DNA of 64,000 bases, taken from Paramoeba atlantica. Its lineage: Eukaryota; Protista; Discosea. Under the pieces are notes generated by a model that saw only the letters and a list, made by a program, of their open reading frames with translations, did no database searches and was not told the origin of the DNA. This document shows positions 5,359 through 47,280 of the stretch, in pieces (within the stretch, counting starts at the first letter, position 1; each line of letters begins with the position of its first letter). The stretch spans positions 496,001 to 560,000 of the forward strand of contig CDRNVI010000044.1 of NCBI GenBank assembly GCA_977017575.1, written 5' to 3'. A program made the translations under genes and the position numbers.

Positions 5359-8277
5359 TCACGATACGCTGCAAAGCAAGTTGGTGACAAAAGGCGCATT
5401 CGGAACGAAAATATCCTCGCTTTCTTTATGCTTCAAAGAAAGAAAAAGATCTACAAGGGTACGTGCCTGTGGAAGAAGAGAAATATAGGCTTTTTCATCC
5501 GTATGTTTCTTTTTCGGTGCGAATGATCGACTCCTTTTCCTGATGTCCTGTTTGAAATCACGATGGAAGACAAAGGGAGGAGAGAATACGTGGCGACGAC
5601 CCTTATGGTATACGCTATCTAGAATCCGACGAGGATGTCTAAGTGACCAAGATTTGTATTTTATCATTGAGTGATGCTTGCATATCGTTTTTCCAAGTGG
5701 TCGCAGCATAAATTGAACAGGACGTGTCCTAGTCCCATGTAGGCTCACGTTTTGAGAGCGATGTGGAAGCAAACACTGATTTACAATCGTTGGTTTCTCA
5801 CCGCCTAACTCATTCGTAATTTGATCAAGCATTCCTAGAGTTTGTAGCGTTGTTCGAAGTCCTTCGTCATATTGTAGAGCTTTCTTCCATGCCAATATTT
5901 TACTTTGCACGGATTCGAGCTCATTCAACTTTGTAAACGCATTCACAAAGAGCGAGCAATCAGTATTACTACCGAACGTATCATAACGTTTTAAGGCGAG
6001 AAATTGTCCCAAGGGACCAAAAGTCAGAAGAAAACGTTCTAGCGCGTTCATTGCCACGGTCGTGTCGTACATCTCAATTTCGGAAAGAGAATCACTTCGC
6101 TGAAAGCCATACGAAATATTACTCCTCTGTAAATACGGACTTAACTCGCCTGTCAGGCAGGCAATTGCTGGAACACATTGTTGTCGAATTTCGAGAGAAG
6201 GAAGATACCACGAAGGGCGAAAATTCTTAACAACTTGATAATGCCGACCCCAGAGACTTCGTAATGCGACCGAATTGCCATGCTTCTCTGCATACTGAAT
6301 AGCCTTTTCCAAAAGTATTGAGAGTCTCGAAAAATTCTGCGTGAAAAAAAAGAAATCGCATATTCGATGTACGAATACAACGTCTGATACGCCAAAAGAT
6401 TTTAGAGCCTGATCTATGAGATTTGAAATTAGGTTTCCATGATCCTGGAAAAGTTGAACCTCGAGTCGAGACAAAAATAAAAAGACCCTCCATCCAATGC
6501 TCTTGCATTTTGCAATCTCAGTAATTTGATTTCGAAGGAGTACCATAGTACGTTGATCGTGATCCTCATTCGAAGTGTTGGATAATGAATTGCCACTTCT
6601 CGTTTTCACAACAAACGAACGTAACTCTTGCAGTAGAAGTAACTCACGATGCTGAAAATTCAGGTCTGAAGAACAGTATTCATCAAATTCTTTCGAATTC
6701 GAGAGTTCCATATTATGTGCAACTTCAGCGTTTGCTACACTGCTTTTTCCCAGTGCCTGAAAACTGCATGTTTTATTGCCTAAATTATTCGTAGAGTCAC
6801 GCGGATACAAACCGAACGAAGAATTTGTACCTGAAATGCATGCATCCGAATGTTTCCTTCGATGAAGCATAAAAAGGATATGAGAAGATAGCGAAGAGGG
6901 ACATTGAAATTGAGAGGAAAAATAATGTGCGGCGCTCATCTGTATCTCCTGCAGTCTCCGTGGATCCGTAAGAGAGAAGGACGGTATTTTAAAGTCCGAT
7001 TTCGATATCTCAATGTTCCTCAATGCAGGAGAATAAAAGTCAATGATACGGTAGGCCCATTTCTCACACTCTGGTAAAGGGAGTGACTCAACATCGGGGA
7101 TGGTGAACGGGATTCCAGATCTATAATAAGAACGTTGAAAAGAATTAAACATTGCGTCGAGCTGAATGCCGTCCAAGCTACGAGAAGGCAGCACACATTT
7201 ACAGAGGTATGTAATCAGTGAATCGTATTCAGGATCCTTACGCAATCGACGAAGAAGAGATGCATGCTCCGTTATTGGATCACTACTATGTATCAAGGGG
7301 GAGTCAAAATATTGCACCAATAAGAACACGAGGTGTCGTGAATTTTGGGAATCTTTTTGCAAAAGATCATATTCGTGGTGGATCAACATGTTCCAAAGGT
7401 TTGATGATCGTGGGTGAAACTGTACTTCGGTAATAGCTCTTTGGAGAATACGACGTTTCAAACTGCTACTTACCTTGGGCTGGACAACGTTCAGGTAATA
7501 TAAATAAGTTTCCCATAGTGGCAGACTATGGCTGTTCCATAACCATTGCAAGAATTCACGCTTAATAAATTTGAGACTAACATCTACTTCAGTGTACGAC
7601 GGCAATACGGCACGATTTTCAACTGAATCACTGGCGCACGTGGCAAATTCGCTCGAAACGTCAAGATTATTCTGGATTAACAAATGTACGTGAGAAATTT
7701 CACGATCTAGCCATACAGATCGGACGGGATGATTCAATGGGTTATGTGACAAATATGACGCGTATATACTCCTGGATATCTTTAAGGGGAGCTTGTCGCA
7801 CGAATCCAATATGAAACTCCAAGCGATATCAAAATCTGAGCTCTTTATTCCATTATAATGATCAGGCCTTCGCAATTTACGAGCCGCAAACTCTGCACGA
7901 TGATCTATAATAAACTGTAAAGCGTTAATCAAAGTTGGTACTTCCACGGCTTCAACGTCAATAACATCCTCAAGACCCGGATAATAATTTTTTTGTGGGA
8001 TGGACGTTCTAAGAGCAAGCATTTGTGATCCAGAATCGATGCTCCTTGGTGCTATGCAAGATTCTAGGTGAGCAATACTCGATATACTAGAGTCGCATTC
8101 GGATGAGTGCGCGGACAGATCCGTTTTCTTGGGCACCTGGCGTTGACAATAAATATCTTTATCATCTAACTGCGGTGAGTCTTGACAGCAATCTTGCGCA
8201 AGTTCTTTTCCGGAACGCCCCCAAAGTAACCATAAAATGTTCTCTAACGAAATCAGAGAATGGTCAATCGATGTCAT
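5359..8277 (-). CDS. HAT-repeat protein, probably CstF-77/Rna14 (Suf)-like
   Basis: 972 aa with HAT-like helices (LWETYLYY, LWNMLIHHE). The segment VFLFLSRLEVQLFQDH...IDQALKSFG...RLSILLEKAI...LWGRH resembles the C-terminal HAT repeats of CstF-77 by eye. Confidence 0.55.
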   Translation of the reverse strand: MTSIDHSLISLENILWLLWGRSGKELAQDCCQDSPQLDDKDIYCQRQVPKKTDLSAHSSECDSSISSIAHLESCIAPRSIDSGSQMLALRTSIPQKNYYPGLEDVIDVEAVEVPTLINALQFIIDHRAEFAARKLRRPDHYNGIKSSDFDIAWSFILDSCDKLPLKISRSIYASYLSHNPLNHPVRSVWLDREISHVHLLIQNNLDVSSEFATCASDSVENRAVLPSYTEVDVSLKFIKREFLQWLWNSHSLPLWETYLYYLNVVQPKVSSSLKRRILQRAITEVQFHPRSSNLWNMLIHHEYDLLQKDSQNSRHLVFLLVQYFDSPLIHSSDPITEHASLLRRLRKDPEYDSLITYLCKCVLPSRSLDGIQLDAMFNSFQRSYYRSGIPFTIPDVESLPLPECEKWAYRIIDFYSPALRNIEISKSDFKIPSFSLTDPRRLQEIQMSAAHYFSSQFQCPSSLSSHILFMLHRRKHSDACISGTNSSFGLYPRDSTNNLGNKTCSFQALGKSSVANAEVAHNMELSNSKEFDEYCSSDLNFQHRELLLLQELRSFVVKTRSGNSLSNTSNEDHDQRTMVLLRNQITEIAKCKSIGWRVFLFLSRLEVQLFQDHGNLISNLIDQALKSFGVSDVVFVHRICDFFFFTQNFSRLSILLEKAIQYAEKHGNSVALRSLWGRHYQVVKNFRPSWYLPSLEIRQQCVPAIACLTGELSPYLQRSNISYGFQRSDSLSEIEMYDTTVAMNALERFLLTFGPLGQFLALKRYDTFGSNTDCSLFVNAFTKLNELESVQSKILAWKKALQYDEGLRTTLQTLGMLDQITNELGGEKPTIVNQCLLPHRSQNVSLHGTRTRPVQFMLRPLGKTICKHHSMIKYKSWSLRHPRRILDSVYHKGRRHVFSPPFVFHRDFKQDIRKRSRSFAPKKKHTDEKAYISLLPQARTLVDLFLSLKHKESEDIFVPNAPFVTNLLCSVS

Positions 8278-35309: not shown

Positions 35310-36020
35310 TCACTTAAATTTTGCATGTTGTGCTTGTAAAATACCAATAATAAGAGCAAAAATACCAAAAGCACTTGCAAAGATCTCCATCACGAGCACG
35401 TGAACGAAGAGAGCCGGATTCGCCGCATCCGCTATCGCACATGCCGAGCCCAATATCCCCACCGCAATACCACACGCGAGATTCCCCAACCCCACCGTGA
35501 GTCCGGAGCAGAACAACATGTACCCGCTTGCCGTAGTCTGCGGGGACATCGCGGATGAACTGCTCATCGCATCCGTGAGGCTATTCTCCCGGAGTTCCAT
35601 TTTACTGGTGTGCACAATCGCGACAATCACCCCGTAGATCGCTACGGCCTCACAAAAAATAACCGAAATTAAATTTTTCGATCGAATGTGAGGCGCACGA
35701 ATCGAGGCCCCCGCGATGGAGGAGCCCGCGGTAAAAATACCCCACGCGGCCCCGAAGATGGAAAACCCCACCGCGAGACCTGCGCCTGTGGCTCCCCACA
35801 CGTAGGGGTTAGCCGCGGCGATTTGACTCAGCGCTAACGCAAGATTCGGGTAGTACGAGCGCTGGAGTAGCGCTGCGAAAAAGTACAGCACGAGTAACAC
35901 GTAGAGGGGGTAGGTGAGGGTACGCACGAAGAGTGAGGTGATCTCATCCCGGCTACTCGGGGGATGAATCGACTCCGTGATGAGGCTGTGGGTGTCGAGG
36001 TCGGTGGGAGGGGAGGCCAT
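35310..36020 (-). CDS. VMA16: V-ATPase proteolipid subunit c'' (Vma16/ATP6V0B)
   Basis: FSIFGAAWGIF, RSKNLISVIFCEAVAIYG, GLGNLACGIAVG and VMEIFASAFGIFALIIG motifs. Confidence 0.95.
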   Translation of the reverse strand: MASPPTDLDTHSLITESIHPPSSRDEITSLFVRTLTYPLYVLLVLYFFAALLQRSYYPNLALALSQIAAANPYVWGATGAGLAVGFSIFGAAWGIFTAGSSIAGASIRAPHIRSKNLISVIFCEAVAIYGVIVAIVHTSKMELRENSLTDAMSSSSAMSPQTTASGYMLFCSGLTVGLGNLACGIAVGILGSACAIADAANPALFVHVLVMEIFASAFGIFALIIGILQAQHAKFK

Positions 36021-36088
36021 GGGGTGGAAATGGGGATGGTTCTAGTAAAAGTGAGGAAACATGAGATGCGGTTCGTATATCAGGGTTA

Positions 36089-37242
36089 GATGGATTATCA
36101 TATTCAGTGCACCAAGTTATCATATCCAGTGCACCAAAAGTACATTTTTACAATTTCAATTTACATATTCAACTTACTTATTCAATTTAGGCATTTCTAT
36201 TACTCAATTTTTTTCCTACCTTCGTTATGACAAAGTATAAGCGGCTCAGCGAAGGAGAGAGACGCACAATACAAGAGATGTTCGAGGCGGGGGCCACGCG
36301 ACGTGAGATCGGCACGGCTATCGGAAAATCACATAGCACCGTTAGCCGTGAGCTGGCCCGAAACAAAAAACGGGGTCGGCGGTACGAGGCCAGCCGTGCT
36401 CAGAGAGAATCCAAGAGACGCTTGGAAAGCAAGCCCGTGCGCCCTCGCATGATCTCTGGGCCCGTGGAGCGCCACATCAAGGAGCGCTTAGGGCAGCTTC
36501 AGTCCAGAACAGGTTCCCAACACTTTAGTTGTTGGGACGCAAGCTTCGCCGTCTGTGGCTACTATTTATCGCCACGTGGCACGTGATGGCGTCGACCCAA
36601 CCGCGGCCGATCAACGATCCCCAACAGAGTCTCCGTCCGACTTCGCCCTCAGATAGTCAACAAGAGGCGTCGGTATGGGGATTGGGAAGCAGGCATAGTG
36701 GAAGGGCATAATCACTCACGTTACATTTTGACCTTGTGTGAGCGGAAGAGCCGATTCCTCGTTCTGCGTGTTCTGCGATCGAAGCATGCCGAAGAAGTGG
36801 CGAATCAAATCATCAAGGGATTAATAAAGTACAAAACTTTTACTATCACTTATGACAATGCAACGGAATTTACAAAGCATCAAAGAGTGAATGAAAAGCT
36901 GGGCTGTAAATCCTTTTTCTGTGCCCCGTATCACTCGTGGTAAAAGGGGGCGGTGGAAAATTCAAATGGTCTTACCAACATTCGCCAATATCACAAGGCG
37001 AGTGAGTCGTTTGAGACACTGAGCCTCAAAGAGGTGAACAAGACAATGAAGAAGTTGAACAAACGGCCCAACGGGCAAACCATTGAAAAATATACCAATC
37101 ATCGTACTAGGTTCATTTTTTTTAATATTCTTGGTGCACTGGATATGAGAAAATGTTTGACACCTGGAACGGGATGTAATTTTCGCGTTTTTGGTGCACT
37201 GGATATGCGAAAATGCTGGTGCACTGGATATGGTAATCCAGG
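36089..37242 (+). mobile_element. IS30-family element, copy 1, with terminal and subterminal inverted repeats
   Basis: Left CATAT(C/T)CAGTGCACCAA at 36099 and 36121. Right TGGTGCACTGGATATG (core of the repeat) at about 37132, 37192 and 37217, ending GTAATCCAGG at 37242. Encloses an IS30 transposase pseudogene. Confidence 0.9.
36227..37090 (+). pseudogene. IS30-family DDE transposase pseudogene
   Basis: HTH YKRLSEGERRTI...GKSHSTVSRELARN; SPEQV...TIYRH; GDWEAG (IS30 GHWEGD with D to G); LTLCERKSRF; TITYDNATEF; FFCAPYHSW*KGAVENSNGL; KLNKRP. Frameshifts and an in-frame TAA. Confidence 0.92.
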
Positions 37243-37390
37243 TTATCCGTATGCAATCAAATAAATTTTAAAAATTTAAGAAGTACGAATTGCTTTGGAA
37301 AATAATGGCGCAAGGGAGACTAGGCACTGAAGGTTCGCTAGGTCAAAGAGAAATGGAAAGAGGAGCATTTACTAGGTACATCAGGGAATG

Positions 37391-38071
37391 CTATTTTGAT
37401 TTTAGGCGAGCTAGCTGCTCCTTTAACTGAAGCAACTTTTCTAAGCCAGGACTCAGACCCGATGGTTTTAGATTACCAGTTTTCGCGGAAAACTTCGACT
37501 TCTTAATTTTCGATGAAGTAGCATCGGATGAGAGCGGTAGAGGTGACACAGCCTCCCTTACAGTATCCTCATCGAATCGCGCAGTCGAGTTTTCTGCAAC
37601 AGAATTCGCATCTAGGTATTCTCCGTCATCCGCCATATGGGGTAGGTATTCTGTCAATCCAGGTTGAGGCAATTCTCCGCTAAAGATAGGTAGTTCATTT
37701 TTTGTAGATACCAAAGTCTCTGTCTCTTCTTCCCGAGCCTGTTGTCGGCGAATCGACCAATGTGTTTGAGCAATCTGCACGTTAAGCCCTTGATTCATGC
37801 GACCGCGTGTGTACTGGGATTGTCTGTGCGAATTTTTCCACGACCATCGAAGCCCAGTGAGTTTGTTTACGGATGAATTAGCTTCCATCTCTGTGGAACA
37901 AGAGACATGTGCGAAGCCACGACTGGTTCCATCTCCATACCCATTCTGTGCGATTTCAATGTCATGAATTGGGATGTCATGTGAAGAAAAACACTCGATC
38001 AATTCGCTCTCGGATACATGCTCCGGAAGATTCCCAACGTAGATCCGGCGAGCATCGTAGGCGATAGGCAT
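37391..38071 (-). CDS. Single-RRM RNA-binding protein
   Basis: RIYVGNLP (RNP2) and RGFAHV (RNP1). Confidence 0.8.
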   Translation of the reverse strand: MPIAYDARRIYVGNLPEHVSESELIECFSSHDIPIHDIEIAQNGYGDGTSRGFAHVSCSTEMEANSSVNKLTGLRWSWKNSHRQSQYTRGRMNQGLNVQIAQTHWSIRRQQAREEETETLVSTKNELPIFSGELPQPGLTEYLPHMADDGEYLDANSVAENSTARFDEDTVREAVSPLPLSSDATSSKIKKSKFSAKTGNLKPSGLSPGLEKLLQLKEQLARLKSK

Positions 38072-38378: not shown

Positions 38379-40856
38379 TTACGGTGTGGTTGATACGGGT
38401 CTTGCATCACCTAAAATATCAGCAAGGTCAAGGGGAGAAGCGCCTACCTTTAAGCTTGAATTCCTAGAACACGTTCGATTTCGGATCCTATTTTCCGAGA
38501 AACATTCTATCACATTTTCAATTCCAAGCATTCCAAGGGATCGCCTTATTTGTGACTTAGAAATCTTATCCAACGAGTCCGCATTTTCTTGAATAAAACG
38601 GAGAAGGCATTCAGGCGGCTGAATCTCAAGTGCAGCATAGCCATACAGAGCCGCACGTACATGTGCCGTGTGGAGACCTGTAACGCTGAGGCGTTCAAAA
38701 GTCTGCGTCACACACTGAATCAGAGGAATATTTTTGTAATTCAATCTTCCAAGCGAATATACGATTGTTGCGGCCTCGAATTCTTCCATATGCCTTGAAT
38801 GAGCAACGAAATCCGAGAGGACCTGGAGAGCTGGAAGGTGAAAAATTTTCGCTCTTGCGAAAGAAGTTAGAATTACAGCAACTTCTTTGTCTGTCGGAGC
38901 TGGGGGAAGTCTTCTGGGACTACTCGCCTTTTGCAGCCACATTTTAGAAAGGTAGTCTCCAACTATAGTATAGAACTGGTGAACATCATGATCGACGGGC
39001 CCGAAAAGTTTGCCGGCAGCAAGCATTACAATAGCGACATGGCCAACCTCATAGGAGGATATGTGCGATGAAATGTAACGCAACATATTTCTTTGTGGTG
39101 TTAAAGGTTGACCAGCTGGTTTAGAAACTGCTAAGTTAGCCTCTCGAGACAGGCTGGGCCCCGTTCCTGATGCGTTACCGTTCTGAATTTTATGGAAGAC
39201 ACCATGTAAAGTACATAGCGCATCAAATATCATTACAAGTTCTCTAGGTCGAAAGACGTGCAATGATTTGCTTTCCATAACTCTTCGCAACTGTTGCAGA
39301 AGCGGTATCATATAAAATTCTTGCGAAAGACCTGTTAATGCCTTGAACAGTATTGCAAGACTGAGTGGCTCTAGTGCCTTGGAAACGATAAAAGCCCGAG
39401 CCAGCAAGCCATCTACGAGATCGTTAGAACATAAAATACTTCCACGAGGCAACTTAGAAACCGCGTAAAGCGATTGCACAACATCGCGTGCGGGGAGCTC
39501 CCCATCAATCTGAATTTGTAGAGCTTTGACGAGTCCTGACTTAAAGTCGTCACACCAATATTTTGACTGGCTCGGTGCACAAGTTATGACAGAGATAACT
39601 TGCTTTTGAGATAGTACTGTTGAGATGCATTTCGATTCTGAGTTGATACACTTCATAAATATGCGCGAAAAAGTGGTAAATACTGTACCGGCTTCTTCCG
39701 CGCTCACGTCCATTCGATGTAAGGACACAAAAGCCTTTGCGATGGAGGAGCATAATGCTGCAAGGTCGGAGAGAAATATCCCATGAAGTTTAGTATCATG
39801 GGCTACATTATCTTTAGAAATCGATGAGCAATATGCCTTAACCAATCCTAGAGCGGATTCCCCCACTTCAGCAAGGCTCTTACCAGGAAACCGAGAAAGC
39901 ACGTTGAGTAACCCACACAGATCCTCGAGCGAGAGAGCATGACGTTGAATAAAACCGCTGAAACGAGTAAAGGTAACTCGCAGAATTCTTTCTGCAGTGT
40001 CTCGAAGCCCGATCACTCTTGGATCATATTTAATATTCGTCTCGTGCTGCAACCGGACACAACACCAAAGCAATCGTGTTAGCAGTGACGGAGACAATTC
40101 CCCACAATTTTCCGCTGCGGTGTGAAAGAATGTTTGAATCAGATGCGCATATTGCACTGAAGTCAGTAAGTTGGCCTGAGAAGGGACCGAAGGGTTCAAA
40201 ATTGTTAGAGCCGTGGTTGAAGCAGGAGCCTTAGAGAGTTCCAGTGTATCCCAAAGCATAGTTACAACGTCGCCGGATACCAAATTCGCTATTTGTAGTT
40301 CAATATGACGCACAAAACGAGGAAGTAAGCATATAATATTCAAGTGAAGAACGATGCCGTACAGGCGGACAAGTTCGACACCTGCTACTTCCTGACTGAT
40401 GCTCTCAATTTGTGGTATCAAGACTTCCATAACAAGCTTATTGGCAGCTGAAACACTATTCTTCTCACAAAGTCTTTTCGTTATTTTACACGTGTTGGTG
40501 CTTACTAGTAAGGCGGTTAGTGCAACCAACATTAGTCGTTCTCGAACTGTTTTCCCGTGCCATGTATTGGCTTCTCCTAATGTCGTAATGCAGGAAATTC
40601 TCTTCTCGAAAGGAATCTGTACAGAACTACTGTTGGCCACAAGTTCGCACACATCCTCGAATGGTGTATTAAGAATACCTATACTTCTTGAAAGGTTATC
40701 GATTATCGATGCCCCGCATCTGGCTGAGCATGTTGAGTAAGAACGAGCCAGATGCCTCACGTGAGAAATAGGAAGTGCTGGATCCGCATTAACCAAGAGA
40801 CGGAACGCCATTGATTCGGTGGAATGGCCCGCCAAGCGCACGAATTGAATAACCAT
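38379..40856 (-). CDS. Helical-repeat protein (FASTK/RAP/RESC-like), possibly a mitochondrial RNA factor
   Basis: 825 aa with roughly 35-40-aa repeats such as FRPRELVMIFDAL, EVGHVAIVMLAAGKL, DKEVAVILTSFARAK and EAATIVYSLGRL. Confidence 0.5.
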   Translation of the reverse strand: MVIQFVRLAGHSTESMAFRLLVNADPALPISHVRHLARSYSTCSARCGASIIDNLSRSIGILNTPFEDVCELVANSSSVQIPFEKRISCITTLGEANTWHGKTVRERLMLVALTALLVSTNTCKITKRLCEKNSVSAANKLVMEVLIPQIESISQEVAGVELVRLYGIVLHLNIICLLPRFVRHIELQIANLVSGDVVTMLWDTLELSKAPASTTALTILNPSVPSQANLLTSVQYAHLIQTFFHTAAENCGELSPSLLTRLLWCCVRLQHETNIKYDPRVIGLRDTAERILRVTFTRFSGFIQRHALSLEDLCGLLNVLSRFPGKSLAEVGESALGLVKAYCSSISKDNVAHDTKLHGIFLSDLAALCSSIAKAFVSLHRMDVSAEEAGTVFTTFSRIFMKCINSESKCISTVLSQKQVISVITCAPSQSKYWCDDFKSGLVKALQIQIDGELPARDVVQSLYAVSKLPRGSILCSNDLVDGLLARAFIVSKALEPLSLAILFKALTGLSQEFYMIPLLQQLRRVMESKSLHVFRPRELVMIFDALCTLHGVFHKIQNGNASGTGPSLSREANLAVSKPAGQPLTPQRNMLRYISSHISSYEVGHVAIVMLAAGKLFGPVDHDVHQFYTIVGDYLSKMWLQKASSPRRLPPAPTDKEVAVILTSFARAKIFHLPALQVLSDFVAHSRHMEEFEAATIVYSLGRLNYKNIPLIQCVTQTFERLSVTGLHTAHVRAALYGYAALEIQPPECLLRFIQENADSLDKISKSQIRRSLGMLGIENVIECFSENRIRNRTCSRNSSLKVGASPLDLADILGDARPVSTTP

Positions 40857-41446: not shown

Positions 41447-41485
41447 CTGCAACCATAAAGATACAGTTTCTGTACTCTGCTATTG
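41447..41485 (+). other. Degenerate spliced-leader exon-like sequence
   Basis: ctgcaaccataaagatacagtttctgtactctgctattg contains ACAGTTTCTGTACT...TATTG, the conserved 3' half of kinetoplastid SL exons; no GT donor follows. Confidence 0.45.
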
Positions 41486-44012: not shown

Positions 44013-44468
44013 CTAGTAAACTGCCATCACGTTACATTCTACCGTACGGTTCTCAGCGTAGCAAGTGGGATACACGTGAATGTTCGTCGTTCCCGAAACC
44101 CGAAGCTCACATCCCGAGTGCGTAAAGCGTAGCGCTTCGGGCTTTTCCATTTCCTCTGTCACGTTCGGAGAGGCACCTGTACATGGGGTAGCGGTATTTT
44201 CTACACAGTACTTTGCGCTGTGGTTGTAGAACGGACCGCAGGCGTGACACAGGCATCGATCTCTGTCGAGACCCGTGACAGTCCAGTTCACACAACCAGC
44301 GGCCCCACACATGTGCCGACACACGGTATTTCGAGCCTTCCATCTCTCTACCGGGGGGAAGTGAATATCGCCGTCCGTGACCTGAGCTTGTAGTAACGCA
44401 AGATCTGCAAGGTAGCAAATGGCGACAGTAAGAAACTGCGACGTAGAGAGCTTGTGAATTGAGAACAT
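44013..44468 (-). CDS. Cys-rich putative secreted protein, paralog A
   Basis: Hydrophobic N-terminus; CRHMCGAAGCVNWTVTGLDRDRCLCHACG domain shared with the adjacent paralog. Confidence 0.75.
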   Translation of the reverse strand: MFSIHKLSTSQFLTVAICYLADLALLQAQVTDGDIHFPPVERWKARNTVCRHMCGAAGCVNWTVTGLDRDRCLCHACGPFYNHSAKYCVENTATPCTGASPNVTEEMEKPEALRFTHSGCELRVSGTTNIHVYPTCYAENRTVECNVMAVY

Positions 44469-44844: not shown

Positions 44845-45378
44845 TCACCCCTCACACACCCCACACTCCGTGTCTCTTTGAAAGAACACGTACCGTGAGG
44901 TAATACACAGCGGCCGCACCGCCGCCTGGGCAATCCCCGTAATCCGGAGCTCACACCCCGCGTGGCTGAACCGCTCCTCCCGGGGCAGTGCCAGCTCCGC
45001 GGGCATCTCCGGGTTCGCCCCCTCCTCGCAGGGGGCGTTGCGCGCGACCGCGCAGTACCGCGCGTCCTCGTTGTGGAACTTGCCGCAACCGGTACACATG
45101 CACCGGTTGCGGTCCAGCCCGGTGACGGTGTGGTTGACACAGCCCCCGGCGCCGCAGAGCTTGCGGCAGGCGGCCTCGCGGGCCGCCCAGCGCTCCTCGG
45201 GGGAGAAGAGGTAGTCGGTTTGCCCGGAGGCGTGGGTCTCGCCGAGGGGGAGATGGGGGCTATGGGGATTAGGGTTAGGGGGATTAGGGGGGTGGGTGGC
45301 GTGGAGGAGGTTGTGGTGGGGGTAGGGGGAGAGGAGCAGAAGGAGAAGGGGAAGGAGGGAGAAGGGGAAGGGAGACAT
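44845..45378 (-). CDS. Cys-rich putative secreted protein, paralog B
   Basis: Signal-like LLPLLLLLL; CRKLCGAGGCVNHTVTGLDRNRCMCTGCG; same Cys skeleton as paralog A. Confidence 0.75.
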   Translation of the reverse strand: MSPFPFSLLPLLLLLLSPYPHHNLLHATHPPNPPNPNPHSPHLPLGETHASGQTDYLFSPEERWAAREAACRKLCGAGGCVNHTVTGLDRNRCMCTGCGKFHNEDARYCAVARNAPCEEGANPEMPAELALPREERFSHAGCELRITGIAQAAVRPLCITSRYVFFQRDTECGVCEG

Positions 45379-46110
45379 GGGGGTGGGGGAGAATTTGAGG
45401 GTGAGTGAGAATAGGAAAATCTATGAAGAATGAGAAAAAGAGGAAGGAGGGAAGGAAAGATATACCTTTTGGTTCGCTGGTGTGTTCGCTGGTTCAGTGA
45501 ACAAAATAGCGAACACAGCGATCCACTTAACGCGGCTCTTCAAAAGTTAACCTTCAAGATGGTCGAAAGCGTTACAGAAACAGTATCTCTATCTCTAAAA
45601 GGATTATTTGCTTGCATACATTAGTTTTCATCGCCCAACAGATTTTTAATATTTTTGGCCAGTTGAGTTTATCCTCGAGTCCTGGCAAAGAAATAAAAGA
45701 ACGGTGAAGATACATTTAAAACGTTGTTACAGGATAACAGACCCACCGGTACGTTCTCTTGTTACAGGTATGTTAACTTTTATGGCACTCAGTTCTTGAG
45801 TGCTCATGTTGATAAAATAATGATCAGTACTACACACGTAAAAAAATCTTAATTAAAAAAAATTGACCCCTAAACTCGAAAATCCAGAGGGGGGGTATGT
45901 TATCCACCCCTGTTCACGATAACATCCCCCGTGTTATCGTGTTACAGGTACGTTATCCCGGGCCCCCGTTTAACCCAGGCTAAAGTGGACGAGGGAGATA
46001 CTAAAGGCACCCTTGGAAAACCACCACAAAACTGGAACGGTATCTCCCAGTTTGTAGAACATTCTGATGTGACTTTGGGCACAAATCACTCCAAAAAAAA
46101 CGTAGGTCTC

Positions 46111-46331: not shown

Positions 46332-46987
46332 GGTGTATTATCATATCCAAAGCACCAAATTATCATACCCAGGACACCAAAAGGTTTGGGATTTTCATAT
46401 ACAATGCACCAAAAGTCAAATTTTGGAATTTGACTCCTATTTTTTGTACTCGATTTTTTACTCCATGACAAAATGTAGACATGTCGATGAAGGAGATGGG
46501 CGTATTATCCAATAAATGTTCGAGGCGGGAGCCACGAGATGTGAGATCGGCACGGCTATCGGGAAATCCCATAGCACGGTTAGCCATGAGCTGGCCTGCA
46601 ATAAAAAACGGGATCGGCGGTACGAGGCCAGTGGCGCTCATAGACTCCAAACGACGCTTGGAAAACAAGACTGTGCGCCCTCAGATGATCTCTGGACCCG
46701 TGGAGCGCCACATAAAGAAAACTTGTATGAACGGAAGAGCCGATTCCTCGTTCTGCGTGTTGCACAATCCAAACATGCCGAAGAAGTGGCGAACCAAATT
46801 ATCAAGGGACTAAGAAGTATAAAGTTTTCACTATCACAATGGAACGAAATTTTCGAAGCACGAAAGAGTAAATGAAAAGCTGGGCTTCAAATCATGAAAA
46901 TATCTGACACTGAAAAGGCCTCATTTTTCACGTTTTTGGTGCACTGGATATTCGAAAATGTTGGTGCACGGGATCTGATAATCCAGG
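46332..46987 (+). mobile_element. IS30-family element, copy 2, internally deleted
   Basis: Same CATATCCA...CACCAA repeats (three degenerate copies left, two right), ending GATAATCCAGG. ORF 46516 joins the HTH (MFEAGATRCEIGTAIGKSHSTVS) directly to ERKSRFLVLRV; highly similar DNA to copy 1. Confidence 0.88.
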
Positions 46988-47062
46988 CATCTAGAATTAG
47001 GCCTTCGTACTCCTTCCACCCCAAAAGACAACGAATCAAGAGCTCGAAACACTCACGTTATA

Positions 47063-47277
47063 TTCCCGCGGGTATTCCTAAAACGTCTTTTATATCCCAA
47101 GGGCATAAAACGTCGCTGTAGAAAAAGCGGTGTTTGTTGGTAAACGGGACTCCTGGATTATCATATCCAGTGCACCAAAAGCGTGAAACCACCGCTTTTT
47201 CACGAAGCAACTACTACAGCGACGTTTTATGCCCTTGGGTTATACTGTAAAAGCCGTTTTATGGATACCCGCGGGAA
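47063..47277. mobile_element. 215-bp foldback MITE (TA target duplication) containing a solo IS30 terminus at 47152-47181
   Basis: Arms TTCCCGCGGGTAT/ATACCCGCGGGAA, CCCAAGGGCATAAAACGTCGCTGTAG/CTACAGCGACGTTTTATGCCCTTGGG and AAAAAGCGGTG/CACCGCTTTTT; central CCTGGATTATCATATCCAGTGCACCAAAAG. Confidence 0.8.
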
Positions 47278-47280
47278 TAC

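Follow-up and report, generated by a model that had tools for sequence, protein, structure and literature searches.

A decayed IS30-family transposon in a eukaryotic nuclear genome and its probable bacterial ancestry

Introduction

The known distribution of the IS30 family of transposons is prokaryotic, and the locus described here, part of a 64,000-nucleotide stretch of DNA (the window), raises the question of how a transposase gene of this family comes to lie between two eukaryotic genes and whether it has lived there as a transposon. In bacteria, IS30 transposes by copy-out-paste-in, its intermediate being a circle or dimer in which the ends are joined, and it inserts at hot spots or at the ends of other IS30 copies (PMC9333248); IS30 of E. 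coli and IS1655 bear inverted repeats of about 26 nt and duplicate 2-3 bp of their target (PMC9333248, PMC2516522), and tip bases that do not pair are known among members of the family (PMC2516522). Several other families have eukaryotic counterparts: IS481EU, IS3EU and ISL2EU ('MILET') occupy a narrow range of protist hosts, and their transfer from prokaryotes to eukaryotes has been proposed (PMC10045372). IS30 is absent from the prokaryote-eukaryote transposon links listed by Kojima and Bao in 2023, who expect additional ISxEU lineages (PMC10045372).

The original prediction for this locus was made against the background that trypanosomatids lack class II transposons, a statement that holds for that group, since none of the 57 trypanosomatid genomes surveyed yielded a DNA transposon (PMC12278014), and that does not extend to other kinetoplastids, given the Merlin relics of Bodo saltans and Perkinsela, which are related to IS1595/IS1016 and often lie antisense to adjacent genes (PMC8101967). 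Merlin is the sole DNA transposon so far reported in kinetoplastids; in Perkinsela no conserved terminal inverted repeats (TIRs) or target-site duplications (TSDs) have been found for it, and the limits of the elements could not be set (PMC8101967).

Results

Structure and position of the element

The element, which we call copy 1 of family A, occupies 1,154 bp of the window (36089-37242) and carries an IS30-family transposase gene on the plus strand (Table 1). Its GC content is 47%, against 44% in the window. The inverted ends are about 27 nt long, with arms of 24-27 nt that are 92% complementary, and the inner part of the repeat recurs, as two tandem units at the left end and three spaced ones at the right. 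A 17-mer taken from this inner part, CATATCCAGTGCACCAA, finds 11 matches with at most three mismatches in the window, where 0.16 would be expected, and all 11 lie at element ends, in plus orientation at left ends and in minus orientation at right ends: at 36099 and 36121 (+) and 37131, 37191 and 37216 (-) in copy 1, at 46342-46412 (+) and 46936 and 46961 (-) in an older sister, copy 2, and at 47162 in a solo end. The earlier reading of two to three subterminal repeat copies per end is thereby borne out; that of a 27-mer end common to the copies is so in part, in that copy 2 and the solo end are real, the 27-mer being exact only at 47152 and the tips of copy 1 differing from it at a few positions.

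Copy 1 sits 68 bp upstream of the start codon of a V-ATPase subunit c'' gene and 148 bp downstream of the stop codon of an RRM gene, with its transposase gene antisense to both; the domain and structure matches of the two neighbours (Table 1) agree with their original naming as VMA16 and an RRM gene. An exact database look-up of the c'' protein gave no record. At 36042, which is 47 bp short of the element, a contig of run X3 departs from the window and runs on into AACAAGGTACAGAAACTGTATCT, which resembles an inverted-repeat pair at 41455-41474 and 45573-45592; this departure may reflect either a different allele or a second kind of repeat whose insertion is polymorphic.

The outer limits of the element are read from three sources. 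The triplet TTA that flanks copy 1 likewise borders the allele of the element on contig L007 of an independent assembly (ERZ24900291), in which the left tip reads GG as against copy 1; contigs built from reads switch to unrelated sequence at 37240-37242, at the right tip; and the tip octamer of the left end, GGTGGATT, is common to a bacterial-type insertion sequence on contig L010. Because the L010 repeats are homologous and in register, the tips of family A are set at GGTGG...CCAGG, and hence the duplication at 3 bp. We considered and rejected ends of the form TGGATT...AATCCA with GG duplicated as a 2-bp target: this leaves no account of the TTA/TTA and GAG/GAG matches just beyond, the reads include right flanks of CG or GA, and the L010 repeats begin with GGTGGATT instead.

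Table 1. Coordinates of the features discussed; positions refer to the window unless a contig is named
Feature	Position	Strand	Basis or remark
V-ATPase subunit c'' gene	35310-36020	-	Pfam ATP-synt_C; PDB c'' subunits at 1e-47
Left target-site duplication TTA	36086..36088	.	Read from sequence; matches 37243-37245
Left terminal inverted repeat GATGGATTATCATATTCAGTGCACCAA	36089..36115	+	Repeat and 17-mer searches
Second tandem unit of the repeat's inner part, TTATCATATCCAGTGCACCAA	36117..36137	+	
Transposase N-terminal piece with HTH_38, frame 0	36227..36499	+	Pfam; stops at 2-bp deletion
Transposase piece SPEQV...TIYRHVARD, frame +1	36501..36587	+	Translation; stops at 58-bp deletion
Catalytic core piece, frame 0	36587..36940	+	NF033563 positions 142-224, 1.3e-20
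In-frame TAA stop	36941..36943	+	GAA in other copies; shared with L007 allele
C-terminal piece with catalytic Glu (36956-36958) and LNKRP	36944..37102	+	NF033563 positions 230-265; alignment
Two subterminal 17-mers (37131-37147 and 37191-37207)	37131..37207	-	
Right terminal inverted repeat ...GGATATGGTAATCCAGG	37216..37242	-	
Right target-site duplication TTA	37243..37245	.	Read from sequence
RRM protein gene	37391-38071	-	Domain search
825-aa protein gene	38379-40856	-	Language-model features resemble RESC (mitochondrial RNA-editing) proteins of Euglenozoa
Copy 2, older sister with internal deletions, both ends kept	46332..46987	+	Blocks 81-87% identical
Solo right-end fragment, inverted	47152..47190	-	164 bp from copy 2 right end
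Compact 1,082-bp IS30-type element	L010:1-1082		29-nt inverted repeats starting GGTGGATT
Family B arms	L004:5558-5951 and 7700-7886; L003:5723-5973 and 7587-7800		Tandem units, e.g. ATAACGCATAATGTAACCGG

The transposase gene and its decay

Pfam detects HTH_38 (3.8e-15, 36227-36586) and rve (36698-36943) in copy 1, and the NCBIfam IS30 model, NF033563, is matched in three open reading frame (ORF) pieces at consecutive model positions (1-52, 142-224 and 230-265). The gene is nevertheless damaged in four ways, namely by a 2-bp deletion, a 58-bp deletion, the replacement of a catalytic Asp by Gly and a TAA stop. The first catalytic position reads Gly (WEAGIV, 36692-36694) and the second is Asp at 36854-36856; a G>A change at 36693 gives the first Asp back in the L007 allele and in other copies. 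Where the window has lost 2 bp, the L007 allele and all read contigs have an additional CA after 36499, and L007 has 58 more bases between 36587 and 36588. Copy 1 is a pseudogene, and its "protein" is purely conceptual. The original prediction of a protein with all IS30 hallmark blocks stands insofar as all the blocks are present; they are spread over frames 0 and +1, WExD is WEAG here, and the TAA stop comes after PYHSW.

The L007 allele retains an unbroken ORF of 258 codons (L007:2715-3488), terminated by the same TAA. Since this stop is shared and the other lesions are specific to the window, the TAA arose first. The window-specific lesions (both deletions and the Asp-to-Gly change) are absent from all four public runs, the contigs of which carry the L007-type states at 36499, 36693 and the 58-bp site, and they could be either private to the sequenced strain or assembly errors. 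Between the two alleles of the copy 1 locus dN/dS is 1.1, as expected of neutral alleles, whereas between subfamilies (L007 versus L009, dS about 1) it is 0.14; the transposase was therefore under purifying selection during the diversification of the family and decayed after insertion. No intact family A gene was seen among the copies found in the window and in ERZ24900291.

Further copies and signs of transposition

At other loci family A is represented at least four more times, by copies or fragments. Besides the two members listed for the window in Table 1, ERZ24900291 holds a copy on L001 between the uL5 and IPPT genes, which is 94-96% identical and has three tandem end units, a second on L008 (about 82%) and a third on L009 (about 75%), all of them broken. 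The copies cease to resemble one another exactly where the inverted ends stop, and their flanking sequences are unrelated; on L001, too, the 17-mer is confined to the element ends, in plus orientation on the left and in minus on the right. In only three full-length family A copies could target duplications be looked for; they are TTA/TTA in copy 1 and in the L007 allele and GAG/GAG in the L001 copy, while copy 2 is without one (flanks AGT versus CAT). On L008 and L009 the right end is not recognisable and no duplication can be read. No joint of a right end with a left end occurs among the read joints of the public runs, in which contigs drop rare forms. The tail-to-tail arrangement of the copy 2 right end and the solo right end could, speculatively, reflect a preference for element ends as targets.

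Two observations on the neighbourhood of these copies are added in their own right. The solo end is central in a set of nested inverted repeats (47061-47121 with 47214-47279, and 47123-47133 with 47190-47200), such that 47061-47279 forms a palindromic structure. The L001 copy holds a nested, TA-flanked insertion of about 370 bp (L001:6418-6791) with 27-nt inverted ends, CTAAACCCTGTTCCGGGATATTGTGCC, for which window copy 1 keeps the empty site at 37104-37107 (CGTAC-TA-GGTTC); its appearance is that of a MITE of the Tc1/mariner type, mobile at a time when family A had already spread.

IS30 membership and bacterial relatives

Against a curated cut-off of 80 bits for NF033563, the ORF of the L007 allele scores 183.4 bits and P0151, a member of the second clade described below, 245.7 bits; HTH_38 is found in the L007 allele at 4.4e-12. 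The catalytic triad of that allele (D176, D230, E264) is spaced D-53-D-33-E, as it is in P0151, in the bacterial-type P0155 and in P0007, which lies on a bacterial contig, and the 33-residue D-E spacing is a signature of the IS30 family (PMC2516522). Among NCBIfam hits at E<=0.001 the IS30 model is best, followed by weak IS481, IS21 and IS3 matches, with no ISAzo13 model; judged from these models, family A would not appear to belong to Zator. The original description of Zator as a distant relative of IS30 needs correction: Zator is tied to ISAzo13/TP36 (PMC10045372) and has also been placed with IS630-Tc1-mariner (PMC7386202), in short with ISAzo13/ITm. Tc1/mariner (the IS630 group) was rejected as an assignment, because the target duplications are 3 bp (TTA, GAG) and not TA and the IS630 model reaches 28 bits against a cut-off of 100, in P0155 only.

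An exhaustive HMMER search with the core piece of copy 1 gave its best relatives in the ENA assembly ERZ24900291. The closest proteins outside this organism are IS30 transposases with 44-49% identity (the same search and plasmid tblastn). They include proteins of Verrucomicrobia metagenome-assembled genomes named IS30 family transposase (44% to full-length family A), a protein adjoining P2-like prophage tail genes and ISAeca1-type transposases of plasmids; in the plasmid tblastn the core piece of copy 1 is about 45% identical to IS30 transposases. The nearest Atlas clusters among those listed are 91-100% Bacteria, except for one without recorded taxa, and a back-translated pattern scan of bacterial and archaeal genomes gave no confirmed relative.

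The best full-length match to family A, at 46.5%, is P0155, which is encoded on L010, a 1,400-bp Logan contig of the unrelated sequencing run SRR25569788. Its element shares with family A the D-53-D-33-E spacing, the motif SWEKGxVEN and GGTGGATT tips; its ATG is preceded by a GAGG at a distance of 8-11 nt, and we infer that it is bacterial in origin. Its repeats open with GGTGGATT, contain AGTGCA in register with those of family A and agree with them in 16 of 27 positions (post hoc binomial p, about 4e-4). The element differs from family A in having a single 29-nt repeat per end and no subterminal repeats. From this homology of the ends it follows that the eukaryotic ends consist of the ancestral repeat plus additional copies of its inner part, and the L010 element is a candidate for the near-ancestral bacterial form of family A. 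We had considered SWEKGxVEN as a marker of the eukaryotic copies and dropped it, as bacterial-type relatives carry it too.

A second clade

ERZ24900291 also encodes a second IS30 clade, family B, with four apparently intact members (P0151, of 330 aa, P0152, P0153 and P0154; ORFs of 318-340 aa) and four partial ones (P0003, P0165, P0002 and P0208). Its members are 56-76% identical to P0151, the search query, and 38.5-41% identical to family A. The element on L003 has kinesin, PIG-P and HSP90 genes as neighbours. On L003 and L004 the genes lie between inverted arms of about 190-390 bp made up of 20-24-bp tandem repeats, the outer tips on L003 being CCCCCCCGTTTAAGCGCAC and GTGCGCTTAAACGAGGGGG. 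The two families are alike in their match to the IS30 model, in their identical catalytic spacing and in the inverted arms of repeated short units; family B is set apart by the length of its tandem-repeat arms, by its apparently intact ORFs and by its termini, which on L003 read CCCCC.CGTTTAAGCGCAC... where family A has GGTGGATT....

Discussion

Alternative explanations

That an element with a transposase of bacterial type and a GC content slightly above that of the window might be contaminant DNA, or the product of a chimeric assembly join, is one objection to its residence in a eukaryotic genome. Contig L007 of the independent assembly carries the same insertion with identical junctions, at 98.1-99.1% identity to the window locus and in the same order (c'' gene, element, RRM gene, 825-aa gene); the insertion is therefore older than the divergence of the two haplotypes or strains, which are 1-2% apart. 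In runs X1 and X2, short-read contigs extend 40-46 nt past each of the two junctions, and the contig depth summed over the element exceeds that of its flanks several-fold; one contig of run X4 spans the left junction. Several diverged pseudogene copies amid eukaryotic housekeeping genes, one of them with a TA-flanked MITE nested inside, likewise speak against it, so that contamination or misassembly as the source of the element is excluded and we give the idea next to no credence. Scarcely more can be said for the idea that a lone bacterial fragment, once integrated, was copied around the eukaryotic genome by segmental duplication or recombination and never transposed there. It would accommodate the lack of a target duplication at copy 2 and the fact that neither an intact family A gene nor an empty site for the copy 1 insertion was found, but inter-copy similarity that stops precisely at the inverted ends amid unrelated flanks, two copies with differing perfect 3-bp duplications and a dN/dS of 0.14 between subfamilies make it very improbable. 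Transposition of family A within the eukaryotic genome accounts for these observations.

Harder to settle is whether families A and B descend from one transfer followed by diversification or from two separate transfers from bacteria to a eukaryote. In a quick tree family A falls outside the group of family B, on a starred branch; in a careful tree, rebuilt to include the better of the two alleles and three additional copies of family A, each family has 100/100 support and both enter one polytomy with bacterial-type sequences, not joined to each other. Full-length family A is also nearer to P0155 and to the Verrucomicrobia proteins than to family B, and the termini of the two families differ; together with the careful tree, this favours two transfers. 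Against this, the quick tree had the higher likelihood when constrained to join A and B, in the careful tree their constraint to a single clade costs 2.2 log-likelihood units and is not rejected (AU p=0.446), and both families share repeated sites in inverted arms, an unusual architecture; two transfers are thus a live possibility, one that we would stop just short of adopting. By comparison, it seems improbable that the copy 1 transposase is expressed through a trans-splice acceptor of its own at 36189-90, as originally proposed. The upstream signals had been reported correctly as far as the AG at this position, the T-rich sequence before the transposase ATG and the absence of a Shine-Dalgarno motif are concerned, and these are what the proposal draws on. 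However, the main pyrimidine run (36207-36226) is also the strongest and lies 3' of that AG, the next AG (36234-35) already falls in the ORF, which is itself broken, the gene runs against the direction of the surrounding array, and none of the sampled words of the stretch occurs in the one RNA run listed. Orientation relative to neighbours follows no consistent rule in any case, the elements on L001 and L003 being in sense with theirs and copy 1 antisense. The signals of the c'' gene itself appear untouched by the insertion: the 68 bp that separate the element from the c'' ATG contain, in minus-strand reading, a pyrimidine run with an AG after it.

Proposed history and mechanism

Family A is, with good confidence, an IS30-derived family of DNA transposons of bacterial ancestry that diversified in a kinetoplastid-like nuclear genome and of which copy 1 is a decayed, non-autonomous member. 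Its ancestor would have come from a bacterial IS30 lineage and have resembled the compact element of L010; the direction of transfer, from bacterium to eukaryote, is the one we infer. Family A would then have transposed and diversified in the nucleus, leaving 3-bp target duplications, and its ends would have gained two to three copies of a presumed transposase-binding site where L010 has its single 29-nt repeat. Copy 1 inserted before the two haplotypes or strains split and appears to have decayed in order, by the stop codon and then, in the window allele, by two frameshifting deletions and the loss of the Asp. As to mechanism, homology suggests that the N-terminal helix-turn-helix binds the repeated 17-22-bp units and that the DDE core cuts and joins at the tips, and the analogy of bacterial IS30 would point to copy-out-paste-in via a circular junction of both ends. 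With somewhat less assurance, we lean towards seeing in families A and B the first representatives of a eukaryotic transposon superfamily, as yet undescribed, that goes back to bacterial IS30 ('IS30EU'); it would have diversified under selection with many-repeat ends and may still be active through the intact family B genes.

In its main lines the original prediction is thus sustained: an IS30 transposon resides in the nuclear genome of a eukaryote, where it has multiplied and been restructured, as the score above the IS30 cut-off and the TIRs with 3-bp duplications attest; its bacterial ancestry agrees with the nesting of clades A and B among bacterial-type IS30s; the reorganised ends are seen in repeated sites that the nearest bacterial-type relative, L010, lacks; and the chimeric join that had been raised as a possible refutation is contradicted by the second assembly and by the short-read contigs across the junctions. 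The original prediction knew of no described eukaryotic IS30 lineage, and none turned up in the full-text literature on eukaryotic, protist and kinetoplastid IS30, to which our search was confined (Repbase and Dfam lay outside it).

Comparison with known systems

Copy 1 resembles IS30 and IS1655 in its combination of a helix-turn-helix with a DDE transposase, in the 33-residue D-E spacing and in similar repeats and target duplications. The bacterial elements differ from family A in their hosts and in their established copy-out-paste-in, with joined ends and hot-spot or end targeting; family A, in turn, has repeated subterminal sites and a eukaryotic host. With IS481EU, IS3EU and ISL2EU it has in common a multi-copy existence in eukaryotes, TIRs and target duplications, and a transposase affiliated to one prokaryotic insertion sequence family, although those lineages belong to families other than IS30. 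Merlin is comparable as a kinetoplastid DNA transposon that is kin to a bacterial insertion sequence group, but in family A, unlike Perkinsela Merlin, TIRs and target duplications are clear. What is new here, as far as sequences can tell, is a true member of the IS30 family in a new domain of hosts and with restructured ends.

The case offers a near-ancestral bacterial-type relative with homologous ends together with two diverged eukaryotic clades, and one can see in it how the ends changed, those that bore one inverted repeat having become arrays of repeated sites. If our reading is true, a mobile DNA transposon exists in a group long believed to be nearly devoid of such elements, and an active eukaryotic member would allow copy-out-paste-in to be tested in the nucleus and might be made into a genetic tool.

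The host genome

Among the genes at the host loci are those for V-ATPase c'', cytosolic uL5, kinesin and HSP90, and by this content the nuclear genome is plainly that of a eukaryote, uL5 itself being a sequence that does not discriminate among eukaryotes. A trypanosomatid identity of the host finds no support in these data. Unbroken same-strand gene arrays and the RESC-like feature match of the 825-aa protein, which falls below the recognition level of the tool, hint at a kinetoplastid-like host. The 825-aa protein has no Pfam domain, and in a word-based search of 5.8 billion proteins its own ortholog was the sole match; an Rfam search of the window gave no match. Elsewhere on the minus strand of the window, two ORFs at 44013-44468 and 44845-45378, of 151 and 177 aa, share the cysteine-rich pattern CGAAGCVN.TVTGLDR.RC.C..CG.F.N and look like tandem paralogues.
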